Origin: Cyanophora paradoxa CCMP329
Taxonomy: Eukaryota; Plantae; Glaucophyta
Direction: 5' to 3'
DNA: 64,000 nt
NCBI GenBank assembly: GCA_004431415.1
Contig: QPMI01000507.1
Coordinates: 1-64,000, forward strand
The translations under genes were made by a program, and so were the position numbers. The notes beneath the pieces were generated by a model. It was given only the letters and a program-made list of their open reading frames with translations. It was not told where the DNA came from and ran no database searches. Positions 1,950 through 59,322 of this stretch are shown piece by piece. Numbering within the stretch: the stretch's first letter is position 1; every line of letters starts with the position of its first letter.

Positions 1950-2633
1950 TGCGAGGCGAACCGCAATGAGCGCCCGCAGCTCCGTGCACTAGGCTATCGC
2001 TGTTTTGGCCGGCTGGGGCGGCTCTCCGGCGGTCTGCCGCCGGCTGTTCCCGCGGTCGAAAAATTCACTGCACCCCCCCTCCCTTGACGCTGTCGTCAAA
2101 ACCGAGTGCTGGGCCGCGTCGGGCGCGCGCAGCATCTTCAGCGACCTAGCATCGCATCCGTGGTAGGTTTGAGCGCTGCCGGCATGCATCTGAGTGCCCG
2201 AGCTGGCGCCCGCACGCTCGACGGGCGCGCGTCCAGGGCAGCGCGCGCGCAGCCCGCCGGCCACACGAACCACTTGTATGTATGATACAAAGACCTCTTA
2301 CGCTACTAGCTCGCCGGCGCCGCGCCCCGGGCTCCTGTTCACTATGCCAGGATCGGCTGCCAGGGACTGCCTGCCTGGCCGCTGCCATGCCCGGTGCATG
2401 TGCCTACGTATTTGTTCCACCAAGGAGCGCCCCGCTCGCCGCCCCCTGCCTTGCACCATGACCATATACAACAATCCCTCCGGGAATTGAAGCAAATGCT
2501 CCTGGGGGGGGTGCACACCAAGGGCCCTGACACTCGGCGGCTTTCGCGCAATCTTTTATATGAAATAAGATCCTAATTATAAGCTCGAATCTTGACCCCG
2601 TAGCTGGTCGCGCCGGCGCCCCCGCGCGCGCAG

Positions 2634-5600
2634 TGAACCGTGTGTCGGCGGGGGCGTTCGGCGCGGACGCCGGGGAGGGCGTCCTGTGCTTCGTCGCCTC
2701 CCCGAAGGACGGGTCCCTCATCGCCGCCGTCGGCGACCCGTCCGCCGCGAATTCGAAGGACTCCCACCTCGTCAAGGTGCACTTTGCGCGGTCGCTCAAG
2801 GCTGCCGCATGTGCACGCGGGCGGGCCGCTGACTCGCGCCACCGCCCGGCTCCGCGATCGATATCGCTTGCGATCGCAGCTCAGCGCGCCGACATGGACG
2901 ACGGTGGCGGCGACGTCGCGGGAGCTCGGCCTGACGCAGGCGGAGGTCGAGGGCGGCCCCAAGGTCCTCCAGAAGGGCGCCATGAACTGCACCATCGACG
3001 CCGCAGGTGCGCATAATTGAATAGAATATAAATATATATTGTACATGTGCTCGCGCTCGAGCAGCTCTTGACGGCGCGTGCGCTGCAGGGCAGTACGCGT
3101 ACTTCGCGAGCTCGCGGGAGGTGATTCAGGTCGACGCCGCCACGCTCGCGACGACCGCCACCTACCAGCTCGATCCGGACAGGGCCTACGGCGTCGTTGC
3201 GATCCACGCCGCCGGCAATCATGTGCGTCTGGCCCCTCGCCATTGGACAATTCATATTAATAATTTTGCGAACTGTATCACAGGTTTACGTCGTCGCTTC
3301 CCGCCGAAGCGCAGTGAGCATGAGCGGCGACAGCCCCGTCGGTCGTGTCGATCGCCTCAATACTGCGGCGGTCTCGGCCCCGACCTCGGGGGCCATGAAG
3401 CGGGACCTGCGTGCCGTGGCCATGCGCCTCGCCGTCAACCAGTCGGTCGATCTCCCCGCGACCCTCGGCCGGCCGCGCGCGTCGGTCCTGGCGCCCACGG
3501 CGGGCCTCCTCTTCGTGGCCGGCGACGGCCTCGGGGCGCGGGTGCTCCGCCTCGACGACATCACCGTCCACGCCGACGCGCCGCGGATCACGGAGGGCAG
3601 CGCCGCGATGGAGGGCCCGTACAGCGGGGCCGTCGTGGAGAAGGACGGGCGCCTCTACGTCCTCTCCCTCCCCAACCCGCCCCCGACCCCGACGCCGTCC
3701 CCAAGCCCTAGCCCGAGCCCGTCCCCTTCCGCGACGCCGAGCCCGACTCCGGCTCCCGTTTGCAATCCCTGCATGTTCAGACGGGCCTTGCTCGCGGCCG
3801 CGGGGGGCGCCGGCGCTCGCGAGGAGCACGGGCGGTCGCTGCTCTCCTTGCCGAGCTGCGGCAATTGCGCGGGCGGACAGCTACCTGCGGGGCAGTCGTG
3901 CACGCAGTGCTCTGCTCCTGCTCCTTATTGCCCACCCGGGGTAATTGGCTGCGGCCCTCCTCCCATGAGAATTCGCCGCTCTAGATCTCTCCTTTCGGAC
4001 GCTGCGGGCGCGCACGCCCTCCTCACGCTCTTCCACTTCGGAGTTTCTGGTAGCTCGTGCGCTTATGCATATATATGTTTACGATTGTTTTCGTTTCTTT
4101 CCATTCATGTGCATGATACCCCGGTATCGTGCTGTTTGCAGCGTGACGATCTCGCGCAATGACACGTATCGCGCTGAGCTCTCGGTGCGCCGAATCGCAC
4201 TTTTGTTAATAAAAAACAAGTCCGACGTGCACATCAACATGTTAATGCTTGATGTCGCTGCGCAGGCCTCCTCTCCGTCCTCCTCGAGCCTGCCCTTCCT
4301 CTTCTTCCCCTGCGCCTCCGTCATCCCCGGCGCCAACGCCGCCCCGACTGACGCGCGCGCCTACGCCATCGTCCCCTCGGAAGGCGGCCACGGTGCTTTT
4401 GCACGCGTTTCTCGGTTTCACTTGCGGAATTCGAAGGACGCTCATCGCTGACCAGCGGCCGCTTGCGCATAGCGATCGCGGCCTTCTCGCTGTATCCCTC
4501 GCTGAGCAAGGTCGGGACCGCCAGCTCGATCAACGGCAACCTCTCGAAGGTCCTGCAGGTGCGACTCGCAATTCGCTTCAGCAACGCTGGCGCCATCTCC
4601 GGTTTTTCCGGCTCTCAAATTCGACTGCCCTTCAGGTGGTCCGCGCGGGGCCGAACAGCGCCACCGTCTTCATGGGGGTCCCGGGGGTGCCGACCCCCAC
4701 GCCGTCGCCCAGCCCGAGCCCGTCGCCGTCTGCGACCCCGAGCCCGACCCCGTCTGCGACGCCGAGCCCGTCGCCGACGCCGATCCCGTTGACGACGCCG
4801 AGGCCTTGCACACTCTCAGAGTCTGCTTTGAAAACAAACGCCACTCTAGATCTCGAGCTCGATCTTTGTCAGCGGGCATTCCCATGTGCGCGAACTGCGT
4901 TGCCAACGCCCTGGCGGATGGAGCAGCGTGCGAGCAGTGCTACCAATGCGTTTCTTGCAACACCCCTTGTCGGAAACGTGCACTGCTTGAGGAGAAGAAC
5001 GTTAACGCGTCGACGGCTGCGGTAACGATCGCAAACCCGACGCACAGGCGCCTATTGGCGGAAGGTGACGGCGGCATTGTGCTCTGTCCGGGATGCAGAT
5101 TGTCGGCCGATTGTGATACGTCAATTGGATTTGTGAGATCAGGAGGCTCCTGTGGCGGTTGCCCCAGCACTAGTCGGCATTCACGTTCAATTCTTGACTA
5201 CGAGAGAGATACTGACACAGGCGAGTGCGATGACTGAGAACTCGAATGACGTGCACGTTACATTAACGTATATTTTTTTTTCAGGATAGCCCAATTCTTG
5301 GGCGGTGGTTGTATTCTCAGACCACTGACTTCATCGTATGCACTACCGGTTCGGAATAGGCCGAACTCTGGGTCAGCTCATGACCTGTGGCCGGTACACA
5401 GGGATAGGCGCTTCGACGCTAACTCTAAGCGTTCAGTGTGGCCTTGGGGGATAGCTTGGGCGGGGCGTCCTTCTTGGGCTCGCGTTGGCGGTACGTTGTC
5501 GGTAGGGGGGGTGGGGGGGGGTGGGGTGGGGTGGGGGGTAGTACAGGCCTAGGGCGGTTGCACGTCCCCCTATCGTTGGGCGTGAGAGGCGCGGGGCGGG

Positions 5601-8600
5601 TGTCCCGGGGGGGCCGGGATGGGGCTCGGTACGTAAGGGAGGGGTGAGCACGGGCTAGGTGGTGGCCCAGCAGGGCCGGGGCTAAGGTGTGGGGCGAGGG
5701 GCAAGGGTGGCCTGATCGGGGGTCTTGAGCGCGCGCCTGGCATTGCTTCACATAGCGTACATGACAGCTGTGTGTCTCGCCCGGGAGGGGAGCCAGGCCT
5801 TGAGGCCGCTCAGGGAAATAGAAAATGATTAAATGAAAGAAAGAAAGAAAGGGGTGGCCGGAGGCCCCAGCTCTAGGAGGGTCCTAGAGAGTCTACGCCG
5901 CTACGTTGTCCGCTGCCGCGGCGCGGCGGCCGGCGAGGTAGGCCTCTACGGCGGCGGGGCCGCCGATGGCCGCCGTGAGCTCGGTGAGGAGCTTCTGGGT
6001 GGCCTGGTAGTTGGCGAGCGTGATGTTGGCCGGGGCGGGGCCGGGGGCGGGGGCCTGGCCCGGAGCGGGTGCTGGGGCGGCGATCGGCGCGGGGGCGGCG
6101 GCGGCTGCCGCGGCCGCGGCGCTGGCGGCGGCGGGGTGGGGCGCGGGGGCGGCCGGGGCGGCGGGGGCGGCGGCGAGACTATTCGTCTTTCATCTCCTGA
6201 AGAGACTCTGGAGGGCACGGGAGGAAGGCGGCGGCGTACATGTTGACGGACGCGATGATGGCCGTGGCGATGTATACGCGCTGGTGGACGCGCATCCCTC
6301 GCAGGTTCCAGCGTGCGCGGCGGCTGCGCATGCCGTCAACGCGCTTAGCCCAATAGGGGCGAGCATCAAAGTCACCATGTGGGCCGAGGGGGATGCCCAG
6401 CGTGGACGTCGTCTTGACCCAGCGGATCGGGATGGACTGGGTCCATTCCGGGAGCACCGTTGGTTGGCCGGGTCGCTTTACCGGTGCTGCTGCGCCCGCC
6501 AGCATGCCCTCGGTTTTGCCCAGGTTGAGCGAGGAACCGTTGTATTTCCCCGCTTTCCGGTACTTAGCTATGGTCTTCTTGACCGGGCGGCCGGGATCGG
6601 GGCTGCGGTGATCGATCTTGAGCGAGTGCGCCGCGTCGTCTGCATATTGGACTAGCTTGGATTCGATCCGGGGTTCTCGGGGGGCGGGTACACCGGTAAT
6701 TTCCGGGTCGGCGAGGATGTCGCGTGTGGTGGGCTCCTGTTGCGTGTTGAAGAACATACAAGCGAAGGGGTCGCCCTGAAGCGCGCTGCGTGTCACTGGG
6801 ATGATGATGGGGAAGATGGTCCCGTTGATCATCAGTTTTGATCTCGCGCCTTTCGTGACGGCGCGGACGTCGGCTAGGAATTCCAGTGGGAATCCCTGTA
6901 CTGCGAGGACGCGGAGTGCATAGAGGTGCTCCACACGGTCGTACGCTTTCTCGAAGTCGGTGTTCAGAATGACTACGTGCATGCCCTGCCGATCCGCATG
7001 ACGGATTACGGCTTGCATCTGCCAGACGTTGTCTGAGCCGCAGCGGTCCTGCATAAAGCCCGTCTGCACGGAGCTGATCGTGTGCTGGCATGCGGGTGCA
7101 ATGCGCTTGGCTAGGACCGCCCCGAATAGGCGGCGGTCGATTTGCAGGAGGGTGATCGGGCGCCAGTTCTGTATCTTATCGCGGTCGCCCTTCTTATAGA
7201 GCAGTTGGATCAGGCCCGTGCGCTGGCGCTCGGAGAGGGTGCCCAGGGCCCGTGCGCAGTTATAGCTCTCCGTGACTATCGGGCCGAGGATGTCCCAGAA
7301 CGTGATATAGAATTTAACGGTGATGCCGTCCTCGCCCGGCGCCGTGGACTTATTCATGTCTTTAAGGCACGTCTCGACTTCGCCGACCGTATAGGGGGCG
7401 CGCATCGGGGGACGCAAGTGCGGGGGCGCTGTGTCAGTGCAGCGGGAGAGGAGCTCCGCCTCCTCGTGGGAGAGGGGGTCCTCGGGCGTGAGGAGGTAGG
7501 CCGCGCGGAGCTTGGCCACCACCTCCGGGAAAGCCTCGGCGGCTTCCGGGGTCACGTCCACTGGGCCCGAGAGCCCTGTGTTCGTTCTCGGGCGAGCGTC
7601 GTCCGGCTCAGACCCCGATGCATGCGAGCGAGCGCCGTCTGGCTCAGACCCCGCGGGTGTAGCTGGGCGAGCATAGGAATGCTCTTGCGCCCGTGGAGCT
7701 GGCGGGGCCGGCGGATTCGACCGCAGTGGCGGAGGCTGCGGCAGGGTCGCTGGGAGGTCGGGGGGGAGCGGACGCTGTGCCGTGAGGAGCTCGGTGTAGT
7801 ATGCGCAGGCGTAGGCCGCCATGTCCTCCTCCGTCGTCGCCGCGGGGGTACCCTCGCTGGGGGGGTACGGCTGCAGGGAGCGCATGCGGTTGTCAGCCGA
7901 AGAGTACTTGATGTGGCGGGCGAGGTCCGGGGGGACGGTGTGCGCGTGCGCTAGGGAGCGCTCTAGGTGCTTGCGAGAGCTAAGAGCGGCGTCGGCGGCG
8001 TCTAGCGCGGCTTCCTGAACGGTGAGGTAGCCCATGTCGGCGATGACGTAGTCTTCTTCAGTCGTGTTTGGCTCGGCGTCTTGGAGCGCCTGTTCCGCGT
8101 CGCGCCAGAGGCCTGCATTCGTATCGCGCGCTTCGCGGCGGGCCGAGTCAGCGTGCGGGCGGGATCGGCGGGCGAGCTCCCTGTACTCGGCGAAGAGGTC
8201 ATCGAGCCATCGCTGCCAATCTGCGGTGTTACGGGCCGGCTGGCGCTGGAGCGCGGCGGCCGTGAGCTTCCGGACTTCCCTCTGGAAGTCGGGCAGGCGG
8301 AGAACGCTGTCGAGGAGCCGGAAGCGGGACTTGCGGGGCTCCAGCACGGCGTCGGTATGCAGGCGCGCGTAGACGGCGTCGTGGTCGGGGCGTGGGGCCG
8401 CGCCCGCCGTGCGGAGGATGCCGACGCGTTCTGCGGCTACGCACAGGTCAGCCGAGAGGAAGACGTGATCGAGGCGCGCCGCGTTCTGGTCGAAGCGGTT
8501 CGTCTTGCGGTGCCAGCGCGTGTAGATGCGGTCGCGGGGACGCCGGCGTCGGTGCTCATCAAACAGGTTCAGGTCTGCGAGGAGGGTTTTCCAGTGCCCG

Positions 8601-11460
8601 AACGGGGGCGGGGCGCCGGCGCGGCGCCGGCTCTCTAGATGCGGGAGTGCGTAGGCATTGAGATCGCCTCCGAGGATGAGGGCGTCGTCCGGGGGGATCG
8701 CCAGGGATTCGATCGCAAGGGTTGCGCCCTCCGCTAGGCGCTTCTGCGAGGCAGCGTCGTTAGGCGCATATACGCAGATGATATGATACGCGTTTGTATC
8801 GCTTTCTAGGCGCAGGACTGTGACGTCGTGCGGCGCGACGCCGGGCGTGGAGGGGAGGGGGACGAGCGCCGCGGTCGCTCCCGGGAGAGCCGGGATGTTC
8901 TTGCGGACGAGGAAACCCGTTCCTCTGCTCCAGATGTTGGGTTTGAGCTCTGCGGCCGGCGGAATGAGCACTCGCCAAGCGGGTTCGATGCGCTGGGCAA
9001 AGTTCGCGATCTGGCGCGGGCGGAGTCGGTGGTCTATGATGCCCAGGACGTCCACTTTGGTGCGTTTGAGCCAGCCTGCGAGCCAGATGCGGCGAGATAT
9101 GCCTGCGAGGCTTTCGACATTCAAAAAGGCGACCGTGAGGAGGGGGCGGGTCGTCGGGGCGTCCTGGGGCGCTTCCGACGTGGTTGCTGCCTCTGTGGCG
9201 GTACTTGCCGCCATGGGAAGGCGGCTGGGCGGCTGGGGGAGGCTGCAGCTCGCGTTCGGTTGAACTAAGCTACGGAGCGTCGGCCGCGCGAGTTTTGGGA
9301 CCAGCCACGTGCAGTGCTAGCGGGCACCCGCGTTTGGGAAGCCCCACTGCGCCGGCTTACTCGCTCGCGGGCCTTCGCTCAATTTTCCGGGGTACCGGAA
9401 TCCACATTAACGTATATATACGTATGCAAATGCAGGACGCTCACGTCGCTCTCTGTTGGAGGGAGTAACCACCTGTTCCGGGGCCATGGCCAGCTGCCCG
9501 TCGATCGTCCAGTTTTCGCTTCCCGGTGATTGCACATTCAAAGATGCTCATCGCTTTCATAACACTCGAGCGACTGACCATTTCATATTTTTGCTTTTCT
9601 TTCAAACTCGCCAGACTCCTGCTGCAAGCTTGGTATGACGCTCATAATCAATAATCAGTTATCTATAAAACTAATCATGCTCCTATTCATTTGTAATTGC
9701 GCAGACGTCACGTGGGGCGCGATCTCGCCGGTCAACAGCAGCTCGCTGGACGGCACGGTCGCCCGCACGATCGCCGGCGCCGGGTTCCCCACCGACGACC
9801 CCGCGCTCTCCCTCGCCGTCGGGAGCGTCGTCGTGTCGAACCTCGCCGTCGCCTCCAACGGCTCCCTCCTCAGCTTCCTGATCCCCGCCCCGTCCCAGAA
9901 CCCCAGCAACACCGCCGCCGTCGGTTCGAATTCGCGCTGCCGTGAAATGCCATTTCGCCACTGGCCATGGATTCACCCATTCGGACTTTTCGCAGAGACG
10001 CTCTATGACATCGTGCTGAACACGTCGTGCGGCGTGGCCACCTTGCCCAAGTCGTACATCTTCTTCCTCCCGGTATTTTTCCCCGCCGAGCCGACCAAAC
10101 CCTCGTCCGACGGTCATTGTAAATTTGCGCATATGAATTGTTCTTGCAGGGCGGCACTGGGAGCCGGCTGCAGGTCATCGGGATCCGCAAGCGGGTGCCG
10201 GTCGTCAGCAACGAGACAGTCGCCATCAGCTGCACGGTTCGGGTCGTTGGACTGCAGATGAAGTCGTTCGACTCACGATCGCTCCGGACTGCGCATGCAG
10301 GGCTGCAACTTCGACCCGAATGATTTCGTCGAGGTGCTTTAGTTTGTAGCTTTCAGATCGACTTCGATCCCATTCGAAATGGAATTCCGAATTTCGCGAC
10401 GGCGACGCAGGTGTACATCCAGATCCCGGCGGCGAACAGCCGGGGCTGGGTCATCCCGGGGCCGGCCGGCTCGGGCGCGTACATCTACCGCGGGCCGGCG
10501 GGGACGTGCGGCATGAAGGCCCCGAACGCGACCGTCGTCTCCGGCTCGCAAGTCGACTTCGCGTCGCCCGTCTTCAGCGCCGCGTGCATCAAGGACAACT
10601 TCCGCCGCTCCGCGCTGCAGGCGGACCAGAGGGCGCTCAACACCCCCTACGGTGCGCTCGCGATCGAATCTTAAGCTAAATATAAATTTAAACTTGCAGG
10701 AATACATCTAAATGCATCTAGATCTACATTACTCTTGCAATTGTCTCTGACGAATCCCCTGCAGACGTGGTGCTGGTGTCCGCGCAGCAGGGCCCCTTCT
10801 TCATTCCTGCGGTGGGTCACGCACGGCTATCTTCTAATTTCCCATTGAAAATCTGCGCGCTCTAATCATGCGTGGAATTGCCGTTTCGCAGGCGTTCGAG
10901 TGGTTTGATGTGCCGGTGGGCGTTCCCACGACCTTCGCCCCGTACCAGTCCATCGAGACGAACGTGCGCACACTCGCGCAACGTACTACGGTATGATCGC
11001 AAAACTCGCCTGATCTGGGGCCGCGCAGGGCCTACCGGGGTACGCGCCGGCGGTGATCATCCCCGTGGTGCTCGTCATCTGCCTGGTGGGGGTCTTCACC
11101 TACCGCCGCCGCTGGCGCCGCCTCCGCGAGTTCGTCGACGTCCAAGTCGCGTTCGCCGGGCGGGCGCCCGGGGCGGAGAGCGTCGCGGCGGCGATCGCGT
11201 CGTCGCTGCGGGCGCCGCGGGTGGCGGCGGTCGGGCTGAAGGGCGACGGGCGGGGGGCGGTGGTGCGGGTGCACGACGCGCAGCACCGGTCGACGGGCGA
11301 GGTGCGCCGCGTCACCGAGGAGGTCCTCGCGTGGGCGGCCAAGGCCGGGCCCGGCTCCTCCCTCGCCGGGCGCGAGGTCGCCTCTGTCCAGCTCCTCGGC
11401 CAGCCCGCCGCCCTCGACGGCCTCGAGGGCGGCTTCTTCGTCAACCGCGTCTCCATCTAG
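2634..11460 (+). CDS. Type-I membrane surface protein, copy 1 (beta-rich ectodomain, two Pro/Ser hinges with Cys-rich cassettes, IPT/TIG-like domain, TM, cytoplasmic tail); possibly disabled
   Basis: Exon-by-exon match to 31572-36458 on the minus strand. PTPSPSPS hinges at ~3680-3755 and ~4690-4800. IPT-like AISPVNSSSLDGTVARTIAGAGF at ~9715. TM IIPVVLVICLVGVFTY-RRRWRR at ~11055. Frame shift at ~4815, LINE in the 5221-9435 intron, and no signal-peptide exon seen upstream of 2634. Confidence 0.7.
5273..9403 (-). mobile_element. Non-LTR retrotransposon (L1/Tx1 clade), antisense inside an intron
   Basis: Poly(A) tail seen as T-run 5273-5281. TSD ACATTAACGTATA at 5260-5272 and 9404-9416. Contains an APE+RT ORF. 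Confidence 0.93.
6179..9214 (-). CDS. LINE ORF2: APE endonuclease + reverse transcriptase (1011 aa; C-terminus appears truncated)
   Basis: APE motifs FLNVESL, VYAPN, LGGDLN, RLDHVF, PDHDAV. RT motifs APGEDG, LLYKKGD..NWRPITLL, DFEKAYDRV, QGDP, YADD. No C-terminal CCHC domain. Confidence 0.95.
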   Translation of the reverse strand: MAASTATEAATTSEAPQDAPTTRPLLTVAFLNVESLAGISRRIWLAGWLKRTKVDVLGIIDHRLRPRQIANFAQRIEPAWRVLIPPAAELKPNIWSRGTGFLVRKNIPALPGATAALVPLPSTPGVAPHDVTVLRLESDTNAYHIICVYAPNDAASQKRLAEGATLAIESLAIPPDDALILGGDLNAYALPHLESRRRAGAPPPFGHWKTLLADLNLFDEHRRRRPRDRIYTRWHRKTNRFDQNAARLDHVFLSADLCVAAERVGILRTAGAAPRPDHDAVYARLHTDAVLEPRKSRFRLLDSVLRLPDFQREVRKLTAAALQRQPARNTADWQRWLDDLFAEYRELARRSRPHADSARREARDTNAGLWRDAEQALQDAEPNTTEEDYVIADMGYLTVQEAALDAADAALSSRKHLERSLAHAHTVPPDLARHIKYSSADNRMRSLQPYPPSEGTPAATTEEDMAAYACAYYTELLTAQRPLPPDLPATLPQPPPLRSNPPAPPAPRAQEHSYARPATPAGSEPDGARSHASGSEPDDARPRTNTGLSGPVDVTPEAAEAFPEVVAKLRAAYLLTPEDPLSHEEAELLSRCTDTAPPHLRPPMRAPYTVGEVETCLKDMNKSTAPGEDGITVKFYITFWDILGPIVTESYNCARALGTLSERQRTGLIQLLYKKGDRDKIQNWRPITLLQIDRRLFGAVLAKRIAPACQHTISSVQTGFMQDRCGSDNVWQMQAVIRHADRQGMHVVILNTDFEKAYDRVEHLYALRVLAVQGFPLEFLADVRAVTKGARSKLMINGTIFPIIIPVTRSALQGDPFACMFFNTQQEPTTRDILADPEITGVPAPREPRIESKLVQYADDAAHSLKIDHRSPDPGRPVKKTIAKYRKAGKYNGSSLNLGKTEGMLAGAAAPVKRPGQPTVLPEWTQSIPIRWVKTTSTLGIPLGPHGDFDARPYWAKRVDGMRSRRARWNLRGMRVHQRVYIATAIIASVNMYAAAFLPCPPESLQEMKDE

Positions 11461-11881
11461 GCGGCCCGCCAGCCGCCGAGCTGTAGATGCAGCAGGCCAG
11501 GGTCGAGAACTACTTGCAAATTGGCTTTAATTTGACGGTTTGCAATTGATCGTGCTATAGCTAGCGCTCATATTTCTGGTAACTAAGCATGCGCATGCCC
11601 TGCAGCTGGTAGTTTCGAGTTCGTATGTTTCGCATCGATGGTAGTTTCGAGTTCGTATGTTTCGATCGTACGTATACGTATACCGGCACCATGCATATGC
11701 ATATGGCAGCAGCTATATATATATATGTGTACACATGTATATATATACACGCAGGCCTAGCCTACTAGGCTAGTAGCTATAGGCAATTGCAATTGCAACC
11801 TGAGGGATTTTAAATTTCGTTCTTTTCGAATTCGACAACTAGGCAATTTCGACTTCAAATAAATTTGCATCCCGCGGCCGG

Positions 11882-12162
11882 TGTCGCGTGCGAGATTAGT
11901 GTGTCTAATCGTGCGCGCGGGAAGCCCGTGCGGAGTGCAAGCTCGGCAGGGCGGGGAATGGCGAGTGTCGCTGCTGTAGTCGCTAAGATCCAACTCACTG
12001 GGTGTACCCGTCCAGATACGGCGTACCCCGACACAAATACAAGTGACCGCGGCGCTCTAACTAGCCTAGGCGCCGTCGGTCCAGCAGCTCGAAGGCTGAC
12101 GTGATCTAGAGCCCTAGCGGCTCACATATAAATGAGCATCCGCTATAATGTCGGATGCGACA
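11882..12162 (-). repeat. 3' LTR (281 bp)
   Basis: Appears identical by eye to 16824-16981 plus 17854-17976; TG...CA termini with a 6-bp inverted repeat. Confidence 0.93.
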
Positions 12163-16823: not shown

Positions 16824-17976
16824 TGTCGCGTGCGAGATTAGTGTGTCTAATCGTGCGCGCGGGAAGCCCGTGCGGAGTGCAAGCTCGGCAGGGCGGGGAA
16901 TGGCGAGTGTCGCTGCTGTAGTCGCTAAGATCCAACTCACTGGGTGTACCCGTCCAGATACGGCGTACCCCGACACAAATACTAGCACGCCGGCGGCCTG
17001 TGCTCGCGATCGGGTTTTGACTGGGTCGGCCGCCGGATGGAAACGGGGTAGGAAGTCTATTTAGCTAGGGACAGCGAGGGGCCCGCGCGCGGCGTCGCCG
17101 AGCTCGAGTCGGGTGCCGCGAACGCGCGCGCAGTGCTAGCGCTAGCGCTAGCGCTGCGCGCGCGTTCGCGCAGCTGCAGCTGCACGCGCATGCGCAGCCT
17201 GGCAGCACTGCGGCAGCTGGCGCCGCCATGGCCACGCGCCCAGGCGTGGCCCGCGGCCGGCCGCCGCGGCGACGTCGACGGCGCCGGCGCCGCGGCCGGC
17301 GCGGCAGCGCGCGGCCGCGGGCGGCGCCGGCGTGCGCGCGCCAAAGTCCAGCAAGCCACTAGCCGGCGCCGGAGCTCACCTAGCTACGCTGGCCAGCTAG
17401 CGAGCCTGTCGGCTAGCTTGCCGGCTTAAAGCACGGGTACTGCAACACGATTGGCTCCATTCCCCCCTGCTCGAGTCTCGATGCGCCTCCAACTCTCAGG
17501 AGCGCTTTTTTTCCGCATTCGGTACAACAGGTACTTGATGCGGCCTAGCGCGCCACGCGCTGCTTCCCGAGCACTGGCATGTAGGACAAGCTTTGCCGAG
17601 CATCGCAAGAGCTTTCTTATGCACTTGGTCCGGTCCCTATACGAGCACAGGATCAGGCGCTGCAAGGGATAGTTCAGGAAAGGGTCCGGTCCTTTTTTCA
17701 GCGCTGCATTCCGCTCTTCCCGGGTTCTGACAACGAATTCCGGGCTCTCATGCATGCAATAACACTCGGTTAAGAGCTCGGAGCTGGATCGGGAGATGAG
17801 CAGACTCGTCATTTTGCAAGTGACAGGAAACGGGGGCCCTACCCCGTTTCCAACAAGTGACCGCGGCGCTCTAACTAGCCTAGGCGCCGTCGGTCCAGCA
17901 GCTCGAAGGCTGACGTGATCTAGAGCCCTAGCGGCTCACATATAAATGAGCATCCGCTATAATGTCGGATGCGACA
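16824..17976 (-). repeat. 5' LTR interrupted by an 872-bp insertion
   Basis: LTR halves 16824-16981 and 17854-17976 match the intact LTR. Confidence 0.9.
16982..17853 (-). mobile_element. Non-autonomous Helitron/Helentron-like element nested in the LTR
   Basis: Minus strand 5'-TT...CTAG-3'; no TSD is needed against the empty site in the other LTR. Perfect 15-bp subterminal IR at 17038-17052 / 17838-17852. 5' palindrome 17826-17851; 3' stem 16990-16998 / 17028-17036. Confidence 0.8.
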
Positions 17977-31571: not shown

Positions 31572-34500
31572 CTAGATGGAGACGCGGTTGACGAAGAAGC
31601 CGCCCTCGAGGCCGTCGAGGGCGGCGGGCTGGCCGAGGAGCTGGACGGAGGCGACCTCGCGCCCGGCGAGGGAGGAGCCGGGCCCGGCCTTGGCCGCCCA
31701 CGCGAGGACCTCCTCGGTGACGCGGCGCACCTCGCCCGTCGACCGGTGCTGCGCGTCGTGCACCCGCACGACCGCCCCCCGCCCGTCGCCCTTCAGCCCG
31801 ACCGCCGCCACCCGCGGCGCCCGCAGCGACGACGCGATCGCCGCCGCGACGCTCTCCGCCCCGGGCGCCCGCCCGGCGAACGCGACTTGGACGTCGACGG
31901 ACTCGCGGAGGCGGCGCCAGCGGCGGCGGTAGGTGAAGACCCCCACCAGGCAGATGACGAGCACCACGAGGCAGCCGCCGAGCACCACGGGGATGATCAC
32001 CGCCGGCGCGTACCCCGGCAGGCCCTGCGCGGCCCCAGATCAGACGAGTTTAATAATTTTGCGCGTCAATCAAATTTCGCGCGAGTGTGCGCACGTTCGT
32101 CTCGATGGACTGGTACGGGGCGAAGGTCGTGGGAACGCCCACCGGTACCGGCACATCGAACCACTCGAACGCCTGCGAAACGGCAATTTCACGCATGATC
32201 AGAGCGCGCAGATTTTCAATGGGAAATTAGAAGATAGCCGTGACCCACCGCAGGAATGAAAAAGGGGCCCTGCTGCGCGGACACCAGCACCACGTCTGCG
32301 AGGGATTCGTCAGAGACAATTTCAAAAGAATTTTACATTAAACCGGCCAGTTAAAATTTATATTTAGCTTCAGAATCGATCGCGAGCGCACCGTAGGGGG
32401 TGTTGAGCGCCCTCTGGTCCGCCTGCAGCGCGGAGCGGCGGAAGTTGTCCTTGATGCACGCGGCGCTGAAGACGGGCGACGCGAAGTCGACTTGCGAGCC
32501 GGAGACGACGGTCGCGTTCGGGGCCTTCATGCCGCACGTCCCCGCCGGCCCGCGGTAGATGTACGCGCCCGAGCCGGCCGGCCCCGGGATGACCCAGCCC
32601 CGGCTGTTCGCCGCCGGGATCTGGATGTACACCTGCGTCGCCGTCGCGAAATTCGGAATTCCATTTTGAATGGGATCGAAGTCGATCTAGATCTGAAATA
32701 TAGAAAGCACCTCGACGAAATCATTCGGGTCAAAGTTGCAGCCCTGCGTGCGCAGTCCGGATCCGGAGTGATCGGAAATCGAACAACTTAATATGCATGC
32801 GCAGCGACGTCGACAATTGCAATCCAAAGATTCGAACCGTGCAGCTGATGGCAACTGTCTCGTTGCTGACGACCGGCACCCGCTTGCGGATCCCGATGAC
32901 CTGCAGCCGGCTCCCAGTGCCGCCCTACAGAAACGATTCACACGTACAAATTGATGGAAATATAAATTTGGTTGGCGCGGAAATACCGGCAGGAAGAAGA
33001 TGTACGACTTGGGCAAGGTGGCCACGCCGCACGACGTGTTCAGCACGATGTCATAGAGCGTCTCTGCGATAAGCCCGACTGGGTGAATCCACAGCGAGTG
33101 GCGAAATGGCATTTCACGGCAGCGCGAATTCGAACCGACGGCGGCGGTGTTGCTGGGGTTCTGGGACGGGGCGGGGATCAGGAAGCTGAGGAGGGAGCCG
33201 TTGGAGGCGACGGCGAGGTTCGACACGACGACGCTCCCGACGGCGAGGGAGAGCGCGGGGTCGTCGGTGGGGAACCCGGCGCCGGCGATCGTGCGGGCGA
33301 CCGTGCCGTCCAGCGAGCTGCTGTTGACCGGCGAGATCGCGCCCCACGTGACGTCTGCGCAATATTCAGTACAAAGAAGAAGGCACCATGATCATGAGCT
33401 GAGATCAAGGTGCCTACCGAGCTTGCAGCAGGAGTCTGGCGAGTTCGAAAGAAAAGCAGAAATATTAAATGGTCAGTCGCTTGAGTGTTCTGAAAGCGAC
33501 GAGCAAAATTTAGATGTGCAATCACCGGGAAGCGAAAACTGGAAGATGGAGGGGCAGCTGGCCCCGGAACAGATTCCTCCCTCCAACAGGGAGCGTCGCG
33601 AGCGTCCTGCGCGCGCTCGGGGAAAATTCCCTCAGAGCGATCATCTGTAATATAGATATCGTATCCCCAGAGCGCTCACCTGTATTTCCGGATCCATCAC
33701 CACGATTGATTTCGGAGCCCGCGACCGACAACAAACGCGAATGCCGAGCGGGTACCGGTGTTGTTGCGGGGCAACCGCCGCAGGAGCCTCCCGATCTGAC
33801 AAAGAAACCAACGCAATCGACCGACATCCTGCGGTTGCAGGGCGCGACTGCGGGACACTGTAAAATCGCGCCGTCGCCCTCCGCCAGCAGGCCCCTTGCC
33901 GTAGACCGCGAGAGCACCGCAGCTGCCTCCGACGCGTTCTTGTCCTCGAGCAGGCCGCGGCCGCGTTTGAACACGGGCTGCGGCGCCGGCGTGCACGTGA
34001 CGCACTGCTGGCATTCAAAGCACTGCTCGCACTCCGCTCCGCTCGGCAACACGCGTGTGCCGGTGCTGGGGCAGTTCGCGCACATAGGAGTCGAAATCGC
34101 TGAAAGCGACCGAGAGTGACGCTTGCTCGCAGTGCAAGGTTCGCAAGGCCTCGGCGTCGGCGACGGGCTCGGGGTGGCAGACGGGGTCGGGCTCGGGGTC
34201 GCAGACGGCGACGGGCTCGGGCTGGGCGACGGCGTGGGGGTCGGCACCCCCGGGACCCCCATGAAGACGGTGGCGCTGTTCGGCCCCGCGCGGACCACCT
34301 GAAGCGCAGTCGAATTTGAGAGCTTGAATTAACCATGGCCTCTGGGCCATGGGCCATGGCCAGGGATCGCGTTGCGGAAGCGAATTGCAAGCCGCACCTG
34401 CAGGACCTTCGACAGATTGCCGTTGATCGAGCTGGCGGCCCCGACCTTGCTCAGCGAGGGGTACAGCGAGAAGGCCGCGATCGCTGTGCGCAAGCGGCCG

Positions 34501-37135
34501 CTGGTTAGCGATGAGCGTCCTTTGAATTCCGCAAGTGAAACCGAGAAACGCGTGCAAAAGCACCGTGGCCGCCTTCCGAGGGGACGATGGCGTAGGCGCG
34601 CGCGTCGGTCGGGGCGGCGTTGGCGCCGGGGATGACGGAGGCGCAGGGGAAGAAGAGGAAGGGCAGGCTCGAGGAGGACGGCTGGGAGGCCTGCCGAACA
34701 CGCGTTAGTTGCGAGTGAATACATATATAATCAATTCAGCCCCGCGGCCGTGCACGTGCACGTGTATGCGCATGCGGTAGTGCATACCGGGAGTTCAGCC
34801 AGGTATGAGTCGTTGCGGGAGAGAGTCAGACTGCGGCCGCGGACCAGAAACAGAACCGTTTAACGCGGTCAGGGCCATTATTCCACAGACTGAACTGCGC
34901 ATGCGCTCTTTGGAAACGCACGAGCTTCCGGAGCCTCCGAAGTGGAAGAGCGTCACAAGGGCGTTCGAACTCGCCGCGTCCGATCGCGAGAGACCGCCGC
35001 GAAGACCGCGACGGCCAATGCCCGGACAGCAAATGGAGAGCATCCGTCGACGAACGGGACCTGGTGGACACACTATGCAGGCAGGAGAGCTAACGACCGG
35101 GGGAGAGCTGATGACCGGGGGAGAGCTGATGACCGGAGGAGAGCTGACGACCGGGGGAGAGCTGACGACCGGAGGAGAGCTGATGACCGGGGGCGAGCTG
35201 ACGACGGGGGGAGAGCTCGGGGACGGGCTGGGCGAAGGCGTCGGCGTCGGAGATGGCGTTGGCGCCGGCGTCGGGCTCGGCGTGGGGGATGGTGACGGGC
35301 TCGGGCTTGGCGATGGGGACGGCGTCGGCGTGGTGAGCGGGTTGGGGAGGGAGAGGACGTAGAGGCGCCCGTCCTTCTCCGCGACGGCCCCGCTGTACGG
35401 GCCCTCCATCGCGCCGCTGCCCTCCGTGATCCGCGGCGCGTCGGCGTGGACGGTGATGTCGTCGAGGCGGAGCACCCGCGCCCCGAGGCCGTCGCCGGCC
35501 ACGAAGAGGAGGCCCGCCGTGGGCGCCAGCACCGACGCGCGCGGCCGGCCGAGGGTCGCGGGCAGCTGCACCGACTGGTTGACGGCGAGGCGCATGGCCA
35601 CGGCACGCAGGTCCCGCTTCATGGCTCCCGAGGTCGGGGCCGAGACCGCCGCAGTATTGAGGCGATCGACACGACCGACGGGGCTGTCGCCGCTCACTGC
35701 GCCTCGGCGGGATGAGACGACGTAAACCTGCGATACAGTTCACACAATTATTTTTAAAACATTGTAAATGATCATGATCATGAGCGGCGAGGGGCCATGG
35801 CCAGACGCACATGATTGCCGGCGGCGTGGATCGCAACGACGCTGTAGGCCCTGTCCGGGTCGAGCTGGTAGGTGGCGGTCGTCGCGAGCGTGGCGGCGTC
35901 GACCTGAATCACCTCCCGCGAGCTCGCGAAGTACGCGTACTGCCCTGCAGCGCCCGCGCCGTCAAGAGCTGCAGATCTAGACCCGGTGGACAGCTCGAGC
36001 GCGAGCACAATATACATACAATAATATTAATATTAATATTATATTTCATTATGCGCACCGGCGGCGTCGATGGTGCAGTTCATGGCGCCCTTCTGGAGGA
36101 CCTTGGGGCCGCCCCCGACGTCCGCCTGCGTCAGGCCCAGGTCCCGCGACGTCGCCGCCACCGTCGTCCATGTCGGCGCGCTGAGCTGCGATCGCGAGCG
36201 ATCGATCGCGCGCGAAGCCGGGCGGTGGCGCGAGTCAGCGGCCCGTACGCGAGCACATGCGGCAGCACTCGGCCCGGCACGAGGCCGCGCGCGCAATCTT
36301 TAATTTAAATGCAAATGCACCTTGACGAGGTGGGAGTCCTTCGCGGCGGACGGGTCGCCGACGGCGGCGATGAGGGACCCGTCCTTGGGGGAGGCGACGA
36401 AGCACAGGACGCCCTCCCCGGCGTCCGAGCCGAACGCCCCCGCCGACACACGGTTCACTGCGCGCGGGCCAGGGTCCGATGGTCAATCTCAGGAGACTCT
36501 TGAAGAGTCAAGAAATCGAATTCTGGATATGCACATGGTACATGGCCGAGCTACTGCGCATTCATACATAATCACATGCAGATGTACGTATACGTATACG
36601 TATACATATATGGCCCCAGCGGCACTCGTCTAGATCTAGACCTGTACGTATACTTGTGTCGCGATCGCTAACTTATAATTAGTATATATATACGTAAACG
36701 CTATAGCCAGGCTTAAACGGGAAACTGCAGCTGGAGACGCCGCTGAGGCCTCGCGTTATATTCTTCGTTCGTGATCATCTGCAGCTACGCCGGCTCTCGC
36801 AGCTCCGTTCGCGCGGAGGCCGCGTTTCCGCCAAGCGGAAAATTATGCGCAAGGGTAAAATTAAATGGCCTTATGCATATGCATAGCAAACCTAGCCATA
36901 TAGCCTTTAAGCAGAAGCCGATGATCATGAGCACACGTGCACCGCGGCCGGCTGAAAACGCACCTCCCAGCGGGCCGCTGACGAGGCCGCCGTCGAAAGT
37001 GCCGTCCGCGAAAACCGCCGACGACGCGACGAGCGCCGCCAGCAGCAGGCCTAGGGCGCCGAGGCCTAGGGCTCTAGAGACCGCGGCGCCGGCCGTCCGC
37101 GAGCGCGAGGGACGAATCCGAACGCTCATCGACAT
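31572..37135 (-). CDS. Type-I membrane surface protein, copy 2 (inverted paralog of 2634-11460)
   Basis: Near-identical constant exons and TM/tail. Probable first exon with signal peptide MSMSV..ALGLGALGLLLAALVASSAVFA at ~36940-37135 (linkage inferred). SSPPV[VI] hexapeptide repeats at ~35095-35215. Confidence 0.75.
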
Positions 37136-51382: not shown

Positions 51383-51646
51383 CACTTGCTTGAGGTAGGA
51401 CTACCCTGGCCCGGTGACCCCCCCCACCCCCGTCTATCTTTCGTTCGCACTCGAGCTCCTTCAGCATCGCGCCGGCGCCAGCGTCGCCTCGCGCACCCTC
51501 GAGCTCCGCTAGACCTGATATTATCTATAGCCGCTTCACTACCGACCCGTGCTAGCGGGCTCTCTAGATCGCGGCTAGCGCTCGTGCACGCGTACGTGCG
51601 AAGGCCGAAAAATTTCTAGTCGAATGGGGCCGGCCCGGCGGGTCGA

Positions 51647-52935
51647 TCAGGCGCGGGTGCCAAGGAGGGCGAGGACGGCGGCGAAGTCGCTCCTCTTGAA
51701 CGGCTGCCGGCGCCCGTCAGCGCGATGGAGCCCTCGGAGGGGCTGCAGCTGCAGGCCCTAGGGGGCCGGGCCCTCAAGATCTAGATTTAAAGCTTCGTTT
51801 CCAGCCGCGGCCGCGACGCCCTGGAACTAGCACTAGATCTGGATCGGACCCGCCCGCGGCCGCCCTATATATATATAGCTAGGCGCAGGGCCCCGGCCCG
51901 GGCCCCGGGCGCCCCGCGCTCGCCTTGGAGATGTAGGCGCGCATCCCCGCCCGCGTGTGGGCCCCGCGCGCCCCGCGCTCGCCTTGGAGATGTAGGCGCG
52001 CATGCCGGCCCGCGTGCACTCCTCCTGCACGCCCCCGACCTGCCGCCCCGCCCCGCCCCGCTCAGCACTCGCGCGCCGCTAGCTGCAGCTCGCCGGGGCG
52101 GGCGGGGGCGGGCGCACGACGTCGGCGGTGACGGCGCAGACGAGGGGCGGCGGGCGCCCGATCGCCGCCGCGTGTGCCAGGATGCGCTGCGTCGCCTCGA
52201 TGCCGCCCATCACCGGCCTGGTCGCGATCGCCGGCCCCGCGCCCCGCCGGCGTCAGGCACGGGAGGAGAGCGCCGGGGAGGGGAGGGAGGGAGGGGGCTG
52301 ACATGTGGAGGTCCATGAAGACGAGGCGGGCGGCCGCCGGGTCCCGCCGGTACGCCTCCACCGCCTCCGCACCTGCCCGGGCCTCGGCGCCGGCGGGGCG
52401 GCGCGGGGCGGGCGGCGGAGGACCGTTGGAGTGGACGGCGACGGTGCGGCAGCCGAGCGCCGCGAGGAGCTTCGCGATCAGCTGCCGGCCCGTCAGCGCG
52501 GCCGCGCCGCCCCGCGCCGCCCCGAGCGGGCCGCCGCGGAGGCGCGGGGCACCTTCTGGTTGACGGCGTTGTCCTCCACGACGAAGACGCCGACGCCCTT
52601 GCCCTCGCACGCCGCCTCGGGGGCCGCCGCCGGCCCGCGGGGGCGGCGGCACCCGGCGGCTGCTCCTCCTCCGGGCGGGGAGGATGCGCGCGAGGGCGCG
52701 CCGCAGCTTGGCGAGGGTCAGCGGCTTGCGGCACCTGCGCCTTGGTCAGGGCGGGGCGGGGCGGCAGGGGGGCGGGGGCGCGCCATGTGGTCGGAGGGGC
52801 GGGGCGAGGCCTCCTCGCGTTCGCGCTCGGCGGCCCCGCCGGCGGCGGACCGGCCGCGGAGACGAGACGGACGGCGCCGTCGTCGCAGCTCGCGATTGCC
52901 GGGCCCGGCGGAGGCGCGGCGGGCGGCGGTGGCAT
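51647..52935 (-). pseudogene. Partial duplicate of the histidine-kinase 3' end: stand-alone receiver-domain gene or pseudogene
   Basis: ~51640-52850 is nearly identical to ~59320-60380, introns included ([28 protein letters not shown]). It has a different 5' end, a 2-nt loss at ~52733 and a tandemly duplicated exon end at ~51908-52003. Confidence 0.7.
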
Positions 52936-58865: not shown

Positions 58866-59322
58866 CACGGACCCGGGACCGTCGGACTCCCACCTTGCCT
58901 GTCACTGTAATACGTGACTGTATATATATACGCCCCCGCAGACTGGGCCGCAGTGCTGGAGTAGACTACCGGTATATATATAGCTAGAGGCTGTGGCCGA
59001 TAATTCACCAAAAAAAAGCCAGCTGGCGAAATTAAAAACAACCATGATCATGCAATTTCGTATTACCCGGGAAATCCCCCCCCCCATGGGGTTAGCAAAA
59101 ACAAAACACATATGCATCGAAATTTCACATTTTTCAGTTGATTTCCAGATTATATATGGTGCGAATTGATTTGTGGTTGCTTAGTTGACTTATAATATTA
59201 CTACGTACTCATGCAGGATACCTACGATTCACACAATTCGCGCTCACACACAATCGCGATTTAAAATTTGGGCCGGGGCCGGGGCGCGGCCGCCGCTCAC
59301 ACAATCGCCGTCGGGTCGATGA

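Follow-up and report, generated by a model that had tools for sequence, protein, structure and literature searches.

A 64,000-nucleotide stretch of the genome of the glaucophyte Cyanophora paradoxa CCMP329 (contig QPMI01000507.1, positions 1 to 64,000), in the following called the window, carries two tail-to-tail (convergent) paralogs of a type I membrane protein encoded by 17-18 exons. We read the encoded protein as a Cyanophora-specific type I transmembrane (TM) surface glycoprotein in which conserved Cys-rich modules, here called cassettes, are set into a scaffold, with mosaic concerted evolution of the two genes and likely processing at Arg-x-Leu-Leu (RxLL) sites, and we give this combined reading about an even chance. 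An original prediction, made from the letters of the stretch, had seen in the same locus a membrane-anchored protein with hypervariable cassettes bounded by RxLL sites.

Two convergent paralogs in the window

The window is eukaryotic in content: its exons are rich in GC, its GT..AG introns are short and richer in AT, and it contains long interspersed nuclear elements (LINEs) and long terminal repeat (LTR) elements. Comparison of the window with itself gave inverted repeats, in which 2625-5165 and 9432-11542 (+) match 36466-33768 and 33610-31501. Gene models for both copies were built by hand, following the codon phase exon by exon. In copy 2, the intact paralog, a signal-peptide-like exon 1 is followed by five scaffold exons and by hinge 1 and cassette 1, which end exon 5; then come a 43-nt mini-exon, two further exons of the scaffold, exon 8, which holds hinge 2 and cassette 2, and an 81-nt exon 9 that opens with GRSRRSLL and carries two Cys. 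The last eight exons encode an IPT/TIG-like domain, the TM helix, directly followed by RRRWRR, and a tail of ~110 residues. The predicted membrane anchor is borne out by the signal-peptide-like exon and by the TM helix with RRRWRR behind it. The parts of both copies are as follows.

Copy 1
2634-11460, + strand, whole model, with exons 2-17 as in copy 2
2634-2776, 2880-3006 and 3089-3222, + strand, exons 2-4, N-terminal all-beta scaffold, 96-98.5% identity to copy 2
3284-4056, + strand, exon 5, one open frame
3284-3667, + strand, scaffold part of exon 5 (128 aa), the best-conserved piece in the family, 96% identity to copy 2
3668-3757, + strand, hinge 1, a Pro/Ser/Thr-rich spacer resembling extensin and other hydroxyproline-rich glycoproteins (HRGPs); similarity to copy 2 stops inside it, at 3756
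3758-3997, + strand, cassette 1 in an open frame, with CxPC, RRALL, GRSLL, CxNC, CxxC, CPPG and SRSLL
3998-4056, + strand, tail of exon 5, the next scaffold strands, inside the deeply diverged block
4142-4184, + strand, mini-exon 5b of 43 nt; RNA joints support the mini-exon in both copies
4266-4392, 4473-4558 and 4636-4692, + strand, exons 6 and 7 and the head of exon 8, last scaffold strands, 95-97% identity to copy 2; the copy-2 introns matching those around exons 6-8 are backed by RNA joints
4693-4797, + strand, hinge 2 (Pro/Ser/Thr), then the PRPC codons at 4798-4809
4810-4835, + strand, frameshift zone with 8 extra nt compared to copy 2
4836-5220, + strand, cassette 2 in the +2 frame, with CxNC, a CxxC cluster, KRALL, RRLL, CPGC, SCGGCP and RSIL
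5221-9435, + strand, intron 8 of 4215 nt (73 nt in copy 2)
9436-9525, + strand, exon 9, a phase-preserving 90-nt mini-cassette with RRSLL and two Cys and an in-frame length difference of 9 nt to copy 2
9705-11460, + strand, exons 10-17, IPT/TIG-like domain, beta-rich exons, TM helix and cytoplasmic tail of ~110 aa, 97-100% identity to copy 2; stop codon at 11458-11460

Copy 2
37135-31572, - strand, intact paralog, uninterrupted frame of 1188 codons in 18 phase-consistent exons
35343-34981, - strand, hinge 1 (seven SSPPV[VI] repeats) and a short cassette 1
34241-33680, - strand, hinge 2 and cassette 2
33606-33526, - strand, exon 9

The order of a hinge followed by a Cys-rich stretch, which had been proposed for both cassettes, was recovered, but the exon 9 mini-cassette at 9436-9525 had been overlooked. 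In exon 5 of copy 1, hinge 1 and the Cys-rich stretch with RRALL, GRSLL and SRSLL indeed lie in one frame. The peptides with RSLS, KRALL, RRLL and RSIL that were expected after hinge 2 of copy 1 are present as well, although in the +2 frame and not in the frame of the hinge.

Scaffold and cassettes have diverged to different degrees

For each in-frame exon piece, the divergence between copy 1 and copy 2 at nonsynonymous (dN) and synonymous (dS) sites was estimated by the Nei-Gojobori method. The scaffold exons are 95-100% identical (dS 0-0.15, dN 0-0.03), and hinge 2 gave a dS of 0.045 and a dN of 0. Cassette 2, in contrast, showed a dS of 1.08 and a dN of 0.37 over 120 aligned codons, a ratio of ~0.34. 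Values for mini-exon 5b (70% identity) were 1.25 and 0.19, those for the exon 5 tail were 0.76 and 0.13, and exon 9 had a dS of 0.34. Most introns are 64-97% identical, whereas introns 5 and 5b, with 44% and 42% identity, are unalignable. The GC content at third codon positions (GC3) is 0.91-0.97 in all scaffold segments of both copies; in the cassettes GC1, GC2 and GC3 are almost equal, and GC3 amounts to 0.68 and 0.55 for cassettes 1 and 2 of copy 1, and 0.51 and 0.70 for those of copy 2. Since the cassette blocks have diverged both at silent sites and in the adjacent non-coding DNA, and differ in composition, the locus carries the signature of a mosaic. From this we infer that the paralogs are old and that their scaffold was kept alike by gene conversion together with a strong constraint maintaining GC3, while the cassette blocks and their neighbouring introns would be old blocks outside this homogenisation. 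Exons 10 and 14 (219 and 241 nt) are identical in DNA between the copies (9705-9923 and 10411-10651 versus 33354-33136 and 32632-32392), and the introns adjoining them are 8-26% diverged and rich in indels. That silent sites are kept so much better here than introns suggests either a very strong constraint on GC3 or a homogenisation limited to exons.

These comparisons do not agree with the description of the cassettes as hypervariable and rapidly diversifying. The amino acid sequence of cassette 2 is under net purifying selection, its dN/dS being ~0.34 with a saturated dS, the neighbouring introns are equally diverged, and one module is common to the cassettes. When cassettes and scaffold are compared by dN/dS between the two copies, net constraint is what cassette 2 displays, next to the low dS of the scaffold. 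The cassettes appear hypervariable because the scaffold of these old paralogs stayed near-identical while the cassette blocks did not. The flanks of cassette 1 are nearly identical, as had been noted, and blastn gave no alignment of the cassette itself, but it is not free of recognizable similarity, since its CxPC...CxNC...CxxC module is shared with the other family members. Cassette 2 of copy 1 can be aligned with that of copy 2 as protein only, with Cys and basic sites kept, as was seen before.

The cassettes share a module, and the scaffold is an apparent orphan

Copy-1 cassette 1, cassette 2 of both copies, and the matching parts of two further C. paradoxa proteins, P0001 and P0003 (EukProt models tig00020564_g11415.t1 and tig00021221_g19338.t1), were aligned (alignment A2). 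The skeleton common to them consists of CxPC, a basic stretch ending in HxRxL, CxNC, and 8-13 residues that often contain LPxG, followed in the second half by CxxC, more Cys, and RxRxLL with D or E behind it. A scaffold block of exon 5 and then the CxPC...CxNC...CxxC module are common to P0001, P0003, and copies 1 and 2 (alignments A1, A2 and A3). Copy-2 cassette 1 is a shortened module with the seven SSPPV[VI] repeats ahead of it. No Pro/Ser hinge is present in P0001 and P0003, in which the motif has degenerated (RGLF, RLFD, RTALF). Within the window the module is confined to copies 1 and 2. The cassettes would on this comparison be old conserved modules and not free-form sequence.

An exhaustive profile search with the hinge-free exon 5 scaffold alignment (A1) against 1.84 billion protein representatives matched P0001 and P0003 only (E-values of 1.6e-59 and 2.5e-46). 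P0001 was also retrieved by a word search that started from exon 5 (48% identity), and the scaffold part of copy-1 exon 5 is 65% identical to this protein. Word searches with exon 5, P0001, and cassette 2 gave no more relatives inside their length windows; they likewise missed the copy 1 and copy 2 models, probably due to the length filter. A metagenome scan with the scaffold profile gave no match, an exact look-up of the P0001 and P0003 loci returned no record, and a search for literature on their gene identifiers found none. Because P0001 and P0003 were the only matches among 1.84 billion representatives, the scaffold appears to define an orphan, Cyanophora-specific family.

Pfam was searched exon by exon, which weakens the domain tests. 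The cassette exons, the scaffold exons, P0001 and P0003 gave no match apart from a sub-threshold hit to TIG (PF01833). This weak hit was obtained with exon 10 of copy 2 alone (E-value 0.0047, 17.3 bits versus a cut-off of 20.9) and spans profile positions 5-58 of 84, with the remainder of the domain in the next exon. Sema (PF01403) was not matched by any scaffold exon, P0001 or P0003 at E-values up to 10, and PSI (PF01437) was not matched by cassette 2. By eye, the CxxC...CxxC spacing of cassette 2 loosely resembles that of PSI. A profile search of the PDB returned only the YWTD propeller of LRP2, weakly (E-value 0.0066), and inspection by eye revealed a periodicity in the scaffold of a hydrophobic strand, a D/G turn, and a hydrophobic strand, as in propeller blades. 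It is this periodicity and the weak LRP2 match that the idea of a propeller draws on, and we therefore speak of a propeller-like scaffold with reserve. In the ESM Atlas, bacterial propeller-type domains of unknown function (DUFs) were found for P0003 (0.83-0.85) and TNFR/Ephrin_rec_like domains for cassette 2 (0.75-0.78), levels that shuffled sequences also reach, so that both are leads only.

RxLL motifs are concentrated in the cassettes

Motifs were counted inside single-exon pieces and compared with 5000 composition-preserving shuffles. In the cassettes of copy 1 (247 residues) R.LL was counted six times, where 0.17 would be expected, and none of the 5000 shuffles reached six. In the 214 cassette residues of copy 2 there are three (0.12 expected, p = 2e-4). 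The scaffolds of copy 1 (782 residues, 0.25 expected) and copy 2 (846 residues, 0.46 expected) contain none. The wider pattern [RK].[LIVM][LF], chosen to fit the S1P/SKI-1 consensus (R/K)-x-hydrophobic-(L/F/K/T), is found seven times in the cassettes of copy 1, four times in those of copy 2, and zero times in the scaffold. Upstream of the RxLL sites there are additional basic residues, downstream a residue that is small or acidic, and past nearly all of the sites a CxxC pair follows at a distance of 4-9 residues. The S1P-type motif that had been recognized in the cassettes is thus real, strongly enriched there, and conserved between the paralogs. The signal peptide and TM helix would place these sites on the luminal side.

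Comparable motifs are known from other secretory proteins. Plant subtilases cleave RRLL and RKLL in pectin methylesterase precursors (PMC13477033), the SKI-1-like subtilase SBT7 has been reported throughout Archaeplastida in a survey that included C. paradoxa (PMC6713707), and diatom wall proteins contain multiple RXL sites that are thought to be processing sites (PMC5647440).

Both copies are transcribed

Contigs (Logan) from four runs guessed to be RNA were mapped on copy 2. Of the 15 joints listed, all but one skip 62-230 nt, and CT..AC ends, i.e., GT..AG on the gene strand, are present in 12 of these 14. As the joints skip intron-size lengths with such ends, the contigs can be regarded as spliced RNA. 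They support 13 of the 17 introns of the copy-2 model, including those around the mini-exon (34830/34922 and 34689/34787) and on both sides of exon 8 (34295/34395 and 33605/33679). For introns 3 and 4, joints were found only in contigs with copy-1 letters, and for introns 1, 9, 12 and 13 there was no joint among those listed. Copy-2 cassette 2 is covered by contigs over 33680-34295 without mismatch, except for 5 nt, and is kept in spliced contigs, which supports the assumption that the cassettes are exonic and not spliced out of the RNA. Around copy-2 cassette 1, one covered segment (35067-35414) takes in the hinge, the SSPPV repeats and the opening codons of the cassette, and a second one the final 33 nt of exon 5.

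Copy 1 is transcribed too, as there are contigs with its TTCGAA insertion and its diagnostic substitutions, and with the start of exon 5 and the mini-exon of 42-43 nt in their copy-1 form. One contig with the copy-1 mini-exon (X3 record 16) runs 21 nt past the aligned exon 5 tail, toward the 3' end of cassette 1. Another (X2 record 12, on 35072-36466) matches copy 1 at positions 35563 and above, but copy 2 at those under 35530. This is probably an assembly chimera across a stretch that is identical in both copies, and it calls for caution when paralog-specific expression is derived from contigs.

The RNA contig depth was 5-10 times higher over the Pro/Ser hinges (34174-34364 and 35129-35319). 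The contigs at the hinges continue into unrelated sequence, and gave rise to a false joint (34235/35295). Since the deep hinge contigs run into unrelated sequence, many other transcripts of the alga evidently contain such a (Ser/Thr-Pro)n coding repeat.

Copy 1 is probably a defective duplicate

Copy 1 is expressed, and its frameshift, the GC donor and LINE in intron 8, the missing exon-1 homolog, and an upstream stop codon without an ATG make it rather probable that it is a defective duplicate. The distance between the PRPC and MCANC codons is 74 nt in copy 1 and 57 nt in copy 2, and a DNA alignment (A4) places 8 extra nt of copy 1 at ~4811-4830. As a consequence, the hinge 2 frame of copy 1 runs into a stop at 5023-5025. 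The +2 frame of cassette 2, which has 138 codons without a stop and belongs to an open reading frame (ORF) at 4806-5237, joins exons 9-17 correctly from the exon end at 5220. A tiny intron that would remove the frameshift was considered and rejected, as the 26 nt contain no plausible splice sites. All copy-1 exons other than the frameshifted exon 8 are intact. The donor of intron 8 is GC and not GT, and the intron contains an antisense LINE with an intact ORF of 1011 aa (6179-9214, -), comprising an Exo_endo_phos endonuclease and an RVT_1 reverse transcriptase domain. This LINE looks recently active.

At the 5' side, blastn similarity to copy 2 starts at 2625, 9 nt ahead of exon 2, and comparison with copy 2 revealed no homolog of the signal peptide exon in the 2.6 kb upstream of copy 1. 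A stop lies at 2561-2563 in the frame upstream of exon 2, which has no ATG ahead of this exon. Two of the spliced contigs that carry copy-1 letters pass the exon-2 acceptor and extend upstream, and an undetected exon 1 located far upstream is possible. The expected place of exon 1 and intron 1 of copy 1 is taken by an unrelated ORF (1291-1989, -) of 232 aa, or 96 aa from an inner ATG, and copy 1 may have lost its 5' end through a rearrangement or insertion to which this ORF belongs.

Other repeats in the window

The 9-mer TCTAGATCT is present 15 times in the window, against 0.11 expected from dinucleotide-preserving shuffles, with sites at, among others, 3980-3988, 4845-4853, 10717-10725, 32686-32694, 35973-35981 and 36629-36640. 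It is located in introns and intergenic DNA, and two of its sites fall within the cassettes of copy 1 and code for Ser-Arg-Ser there; copy 2 does not have it at the places matching these cassette sites. The 9-mer may be the footprint or target of a small mobile element. There are also direct repeats at 51635-52876 versus 59308-60411 and at 11882-12162 versus 16824-17976. One pair is 92% identical over ~0.9 kb, and the other is 99-100% identical and split by an insertion.

Proposed organization and alternative explanations

Taken together, the protein would be arranged in the order signal peptide, all-beta and probably propeller-like ectodomain, IPT/TIG-like stalk, TM helix, and cytoplasmic tail, with one two-part insert interrupting the ectodomain and a second one following it. 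Each insert would combine a Pro/Ser/Thr spacer, probably O-glycosylated and extensin-like, with a small disulfide-rich module, so that the hinges may hold disulfide knobs off a propeller-like head. We take the conserved basic-x-Leu-Leu sites that stand in front of nearly all Cys units to be, most likely, sites of luminal processing by an S1P/SKI-1-type subtilase, and cleavage at RxLL would result in either a multi-chain ectodomain or shedding of the knobs. That any of these sites is cut is a tentative proposal, to which we give somewhat less than an even chance.

Several points weigh against the reading as a whole. The introns in the homogenised zone are ~17% diverged, compared to ~4% at silent sites, thus gene conversion of DNA over long tracts is insufficient by itself, and the constraint on GC3 must also act. 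The selection analysis is limited to four family members. AlphaFold2 models from alignments of 6 rows gave mean scores in the predicted local distance difference test (pLDDT) of 41.6 for cassette 2 and 33.6 for P0003, and both are unusable. The middle 112 nt of copy-2 cassette 1 (34955-35066) are present in no contig of the four runs, and none of the listed RNA joints skips them. The copy 1 frameshift could be an assembly error, and the cleavage step at RxLL, which is plausible, is deduced from the motif.

In the main alternative, RxLL would be a structural element within a duplicated Cys sub-unit, packing for example as a short helix or strand on the disulfide knot, and would never be cleaved. 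The fixed distance to the CxxC pairs, as in tandemly duplicated sub-repeats, and the decay of the motif to RGLF, RLFD or RTALF in the distant paralogs would fit with this, and duplication alone could yield the enrichment. However, the upstream basic residues (RR, KR, RSR) are conserved too, as is typical of convertase sites, and the motif is wholly absent from ~800 scaffold residues, which leaves this explanation possible but not favoured. The original prediction went further and proposed a membrane-anchored polyprotein from which an S1P protease releases rapidly diversifying disulfide peptides at RxLL, for recognition, defence or mating. The enrichment of RxLL 4-9 residues ahead of almost every CxxC unit, the conservation of these sites between paralogs with variable spacers in between, and the presence of the cassettes in mRNA agree with such a polyprotein, and the difference between cassette blocks in an otherwise homogenised gene could reflect selection for difference. 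Yet the dN/dS of ~0.34 at saturated dS and the equally diverged introns on the side of cassette 1 show no excess of amino acid over neutral change, the cassettes have a fixed module in common, and cleavage at every site would split the scaffold as well. We consider this polyprotein unlikely, and regard the release of free, diversifying peptides with the same scepticism. A combined variant, in which the scaffold is a constant platform homogenised by conversion, selection keeps the cassettes different between paralogs, and an S1P-like subtilase excises disulfide peptides or knobs at RxLL, seems more doubtful still.

Divergence of the cassettes could also be mere pseudogene decay of copy 1, given its frameshift, GC donor and LINE-filled intron, the lack of a signal-peptide exon, and a cassette 2 whose GC3 (0.55) is below that of cassette 1. 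But the cassettes of the intact copy 2 are equally low in GC3 (0.51-0.70), and copy-1 cassette 2 keeps 138 stop-free codons and a dN/dS of ~0.34 with the other exons intact, which makes decay quite improbable. Finally, the sites might resemble PEXEL or TEXEL motifs (RxLxE/Q/D or RRLxx), which are apicomplexan export signals, and be cut by an aspartic protease of the endoplasmic reticulum (ER) or Golgi rather than by a subtilase. RALLE, RSLLE, RGLLE and RSILD do fit RxLxE/D, whereas RALLA, RSLLS and RRLLA do not, and we know of no PEXEL-type pathway in Archaeplastida; this option is very improbable.

Similarity to known systems and implications

The proposed arrangement of a propeller-like head, a small Cys-rich module, an IPT/TIG stalk, a single TM helix, and a cytoplasmic tail is reminiscent of the Sema-PSI-IPT receptors, i.e., plexin, MET/RON and semaphorins. 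A subtilisin-type convertase cuts a propeller loop of MET and plexins, which remain multi-chain. Unlike these receptors, the Cyanophora proteins show no Sema or PSI similarity in the exon-wise Pfam search, and have RxLL instead of furin RxxR sites, Pro/Ser/Thr hinges, and a Cys module inside the head. Plant substrates of S1P and other subtilases (type I pectin methylesterases, RALF, CLEL/GLV) also present a luminal basic-x-Leu-Leu in an archaeplastid secretory protein (PMC13477033, PMC6713707), but they have one or two sites for propeptide removal, compared to 6-7 across the ectodomain here, and are not homologous. Diatom RXL proteins (silaffins, cingulins, SAPs, silicanin) share several RXL sites and Ser-rich regions with the Cyanophora proteins, and SAPs also share the type I membrane anchor, with fragments of SAPs documented (PMC5647440); they belong to an unrelated lineage, function in biosilica, and show no homology. 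RXL processing in the diatom proteins is itself a hypothesis of which the proof is still pending according to that paper (PMC5647440). The Ser/Thr-Pro repeat rods of hinges 3668-3757 and 4693-4797 and of the seven copy-2 SSPPV[VI] repeats are similar to the (Ser/Thr-Pro)n rods between globular parts of the HRGPs of green algae and plants (extensin, pherophorin), although the Cyanophora copies have no pherophorin or extensin domain match in Pfam. The dense CxxC and CPxG in the ectodomain recall CxxC-rich protist surface proteins and Ephrin_rec_like/TNFR-type repeats, but the latter are neighbours of cassette 2 only in the language model, at the shuffled level given above, without a Pfam match.

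Glaucophytes are one of the three primary plastid-bearing lineages, and their cell-surface proteins are almost uncharacterised. The orphan family described here would repeat the layout of an animal receptor, with head, Cys-knob, IPT stalk and TM helix, combined with unusually dense S1P-type motifs. The two genes would also make a clean case of mosaic concerted evolution, with exons at a GC3 of 0.95 beside blocks at 0.55 in one reading frame. If cleavage does take place at the sites, the maturation of surface or signal peptides by subtilases would reach the base of Archaeplastida, and if the reading with excised cassettes were true, the protein would be a membrane-tethered recognition polyprotein of a glaucophyte that sets an early precedent in Archaeplastida for peptide signals made by subtilases.

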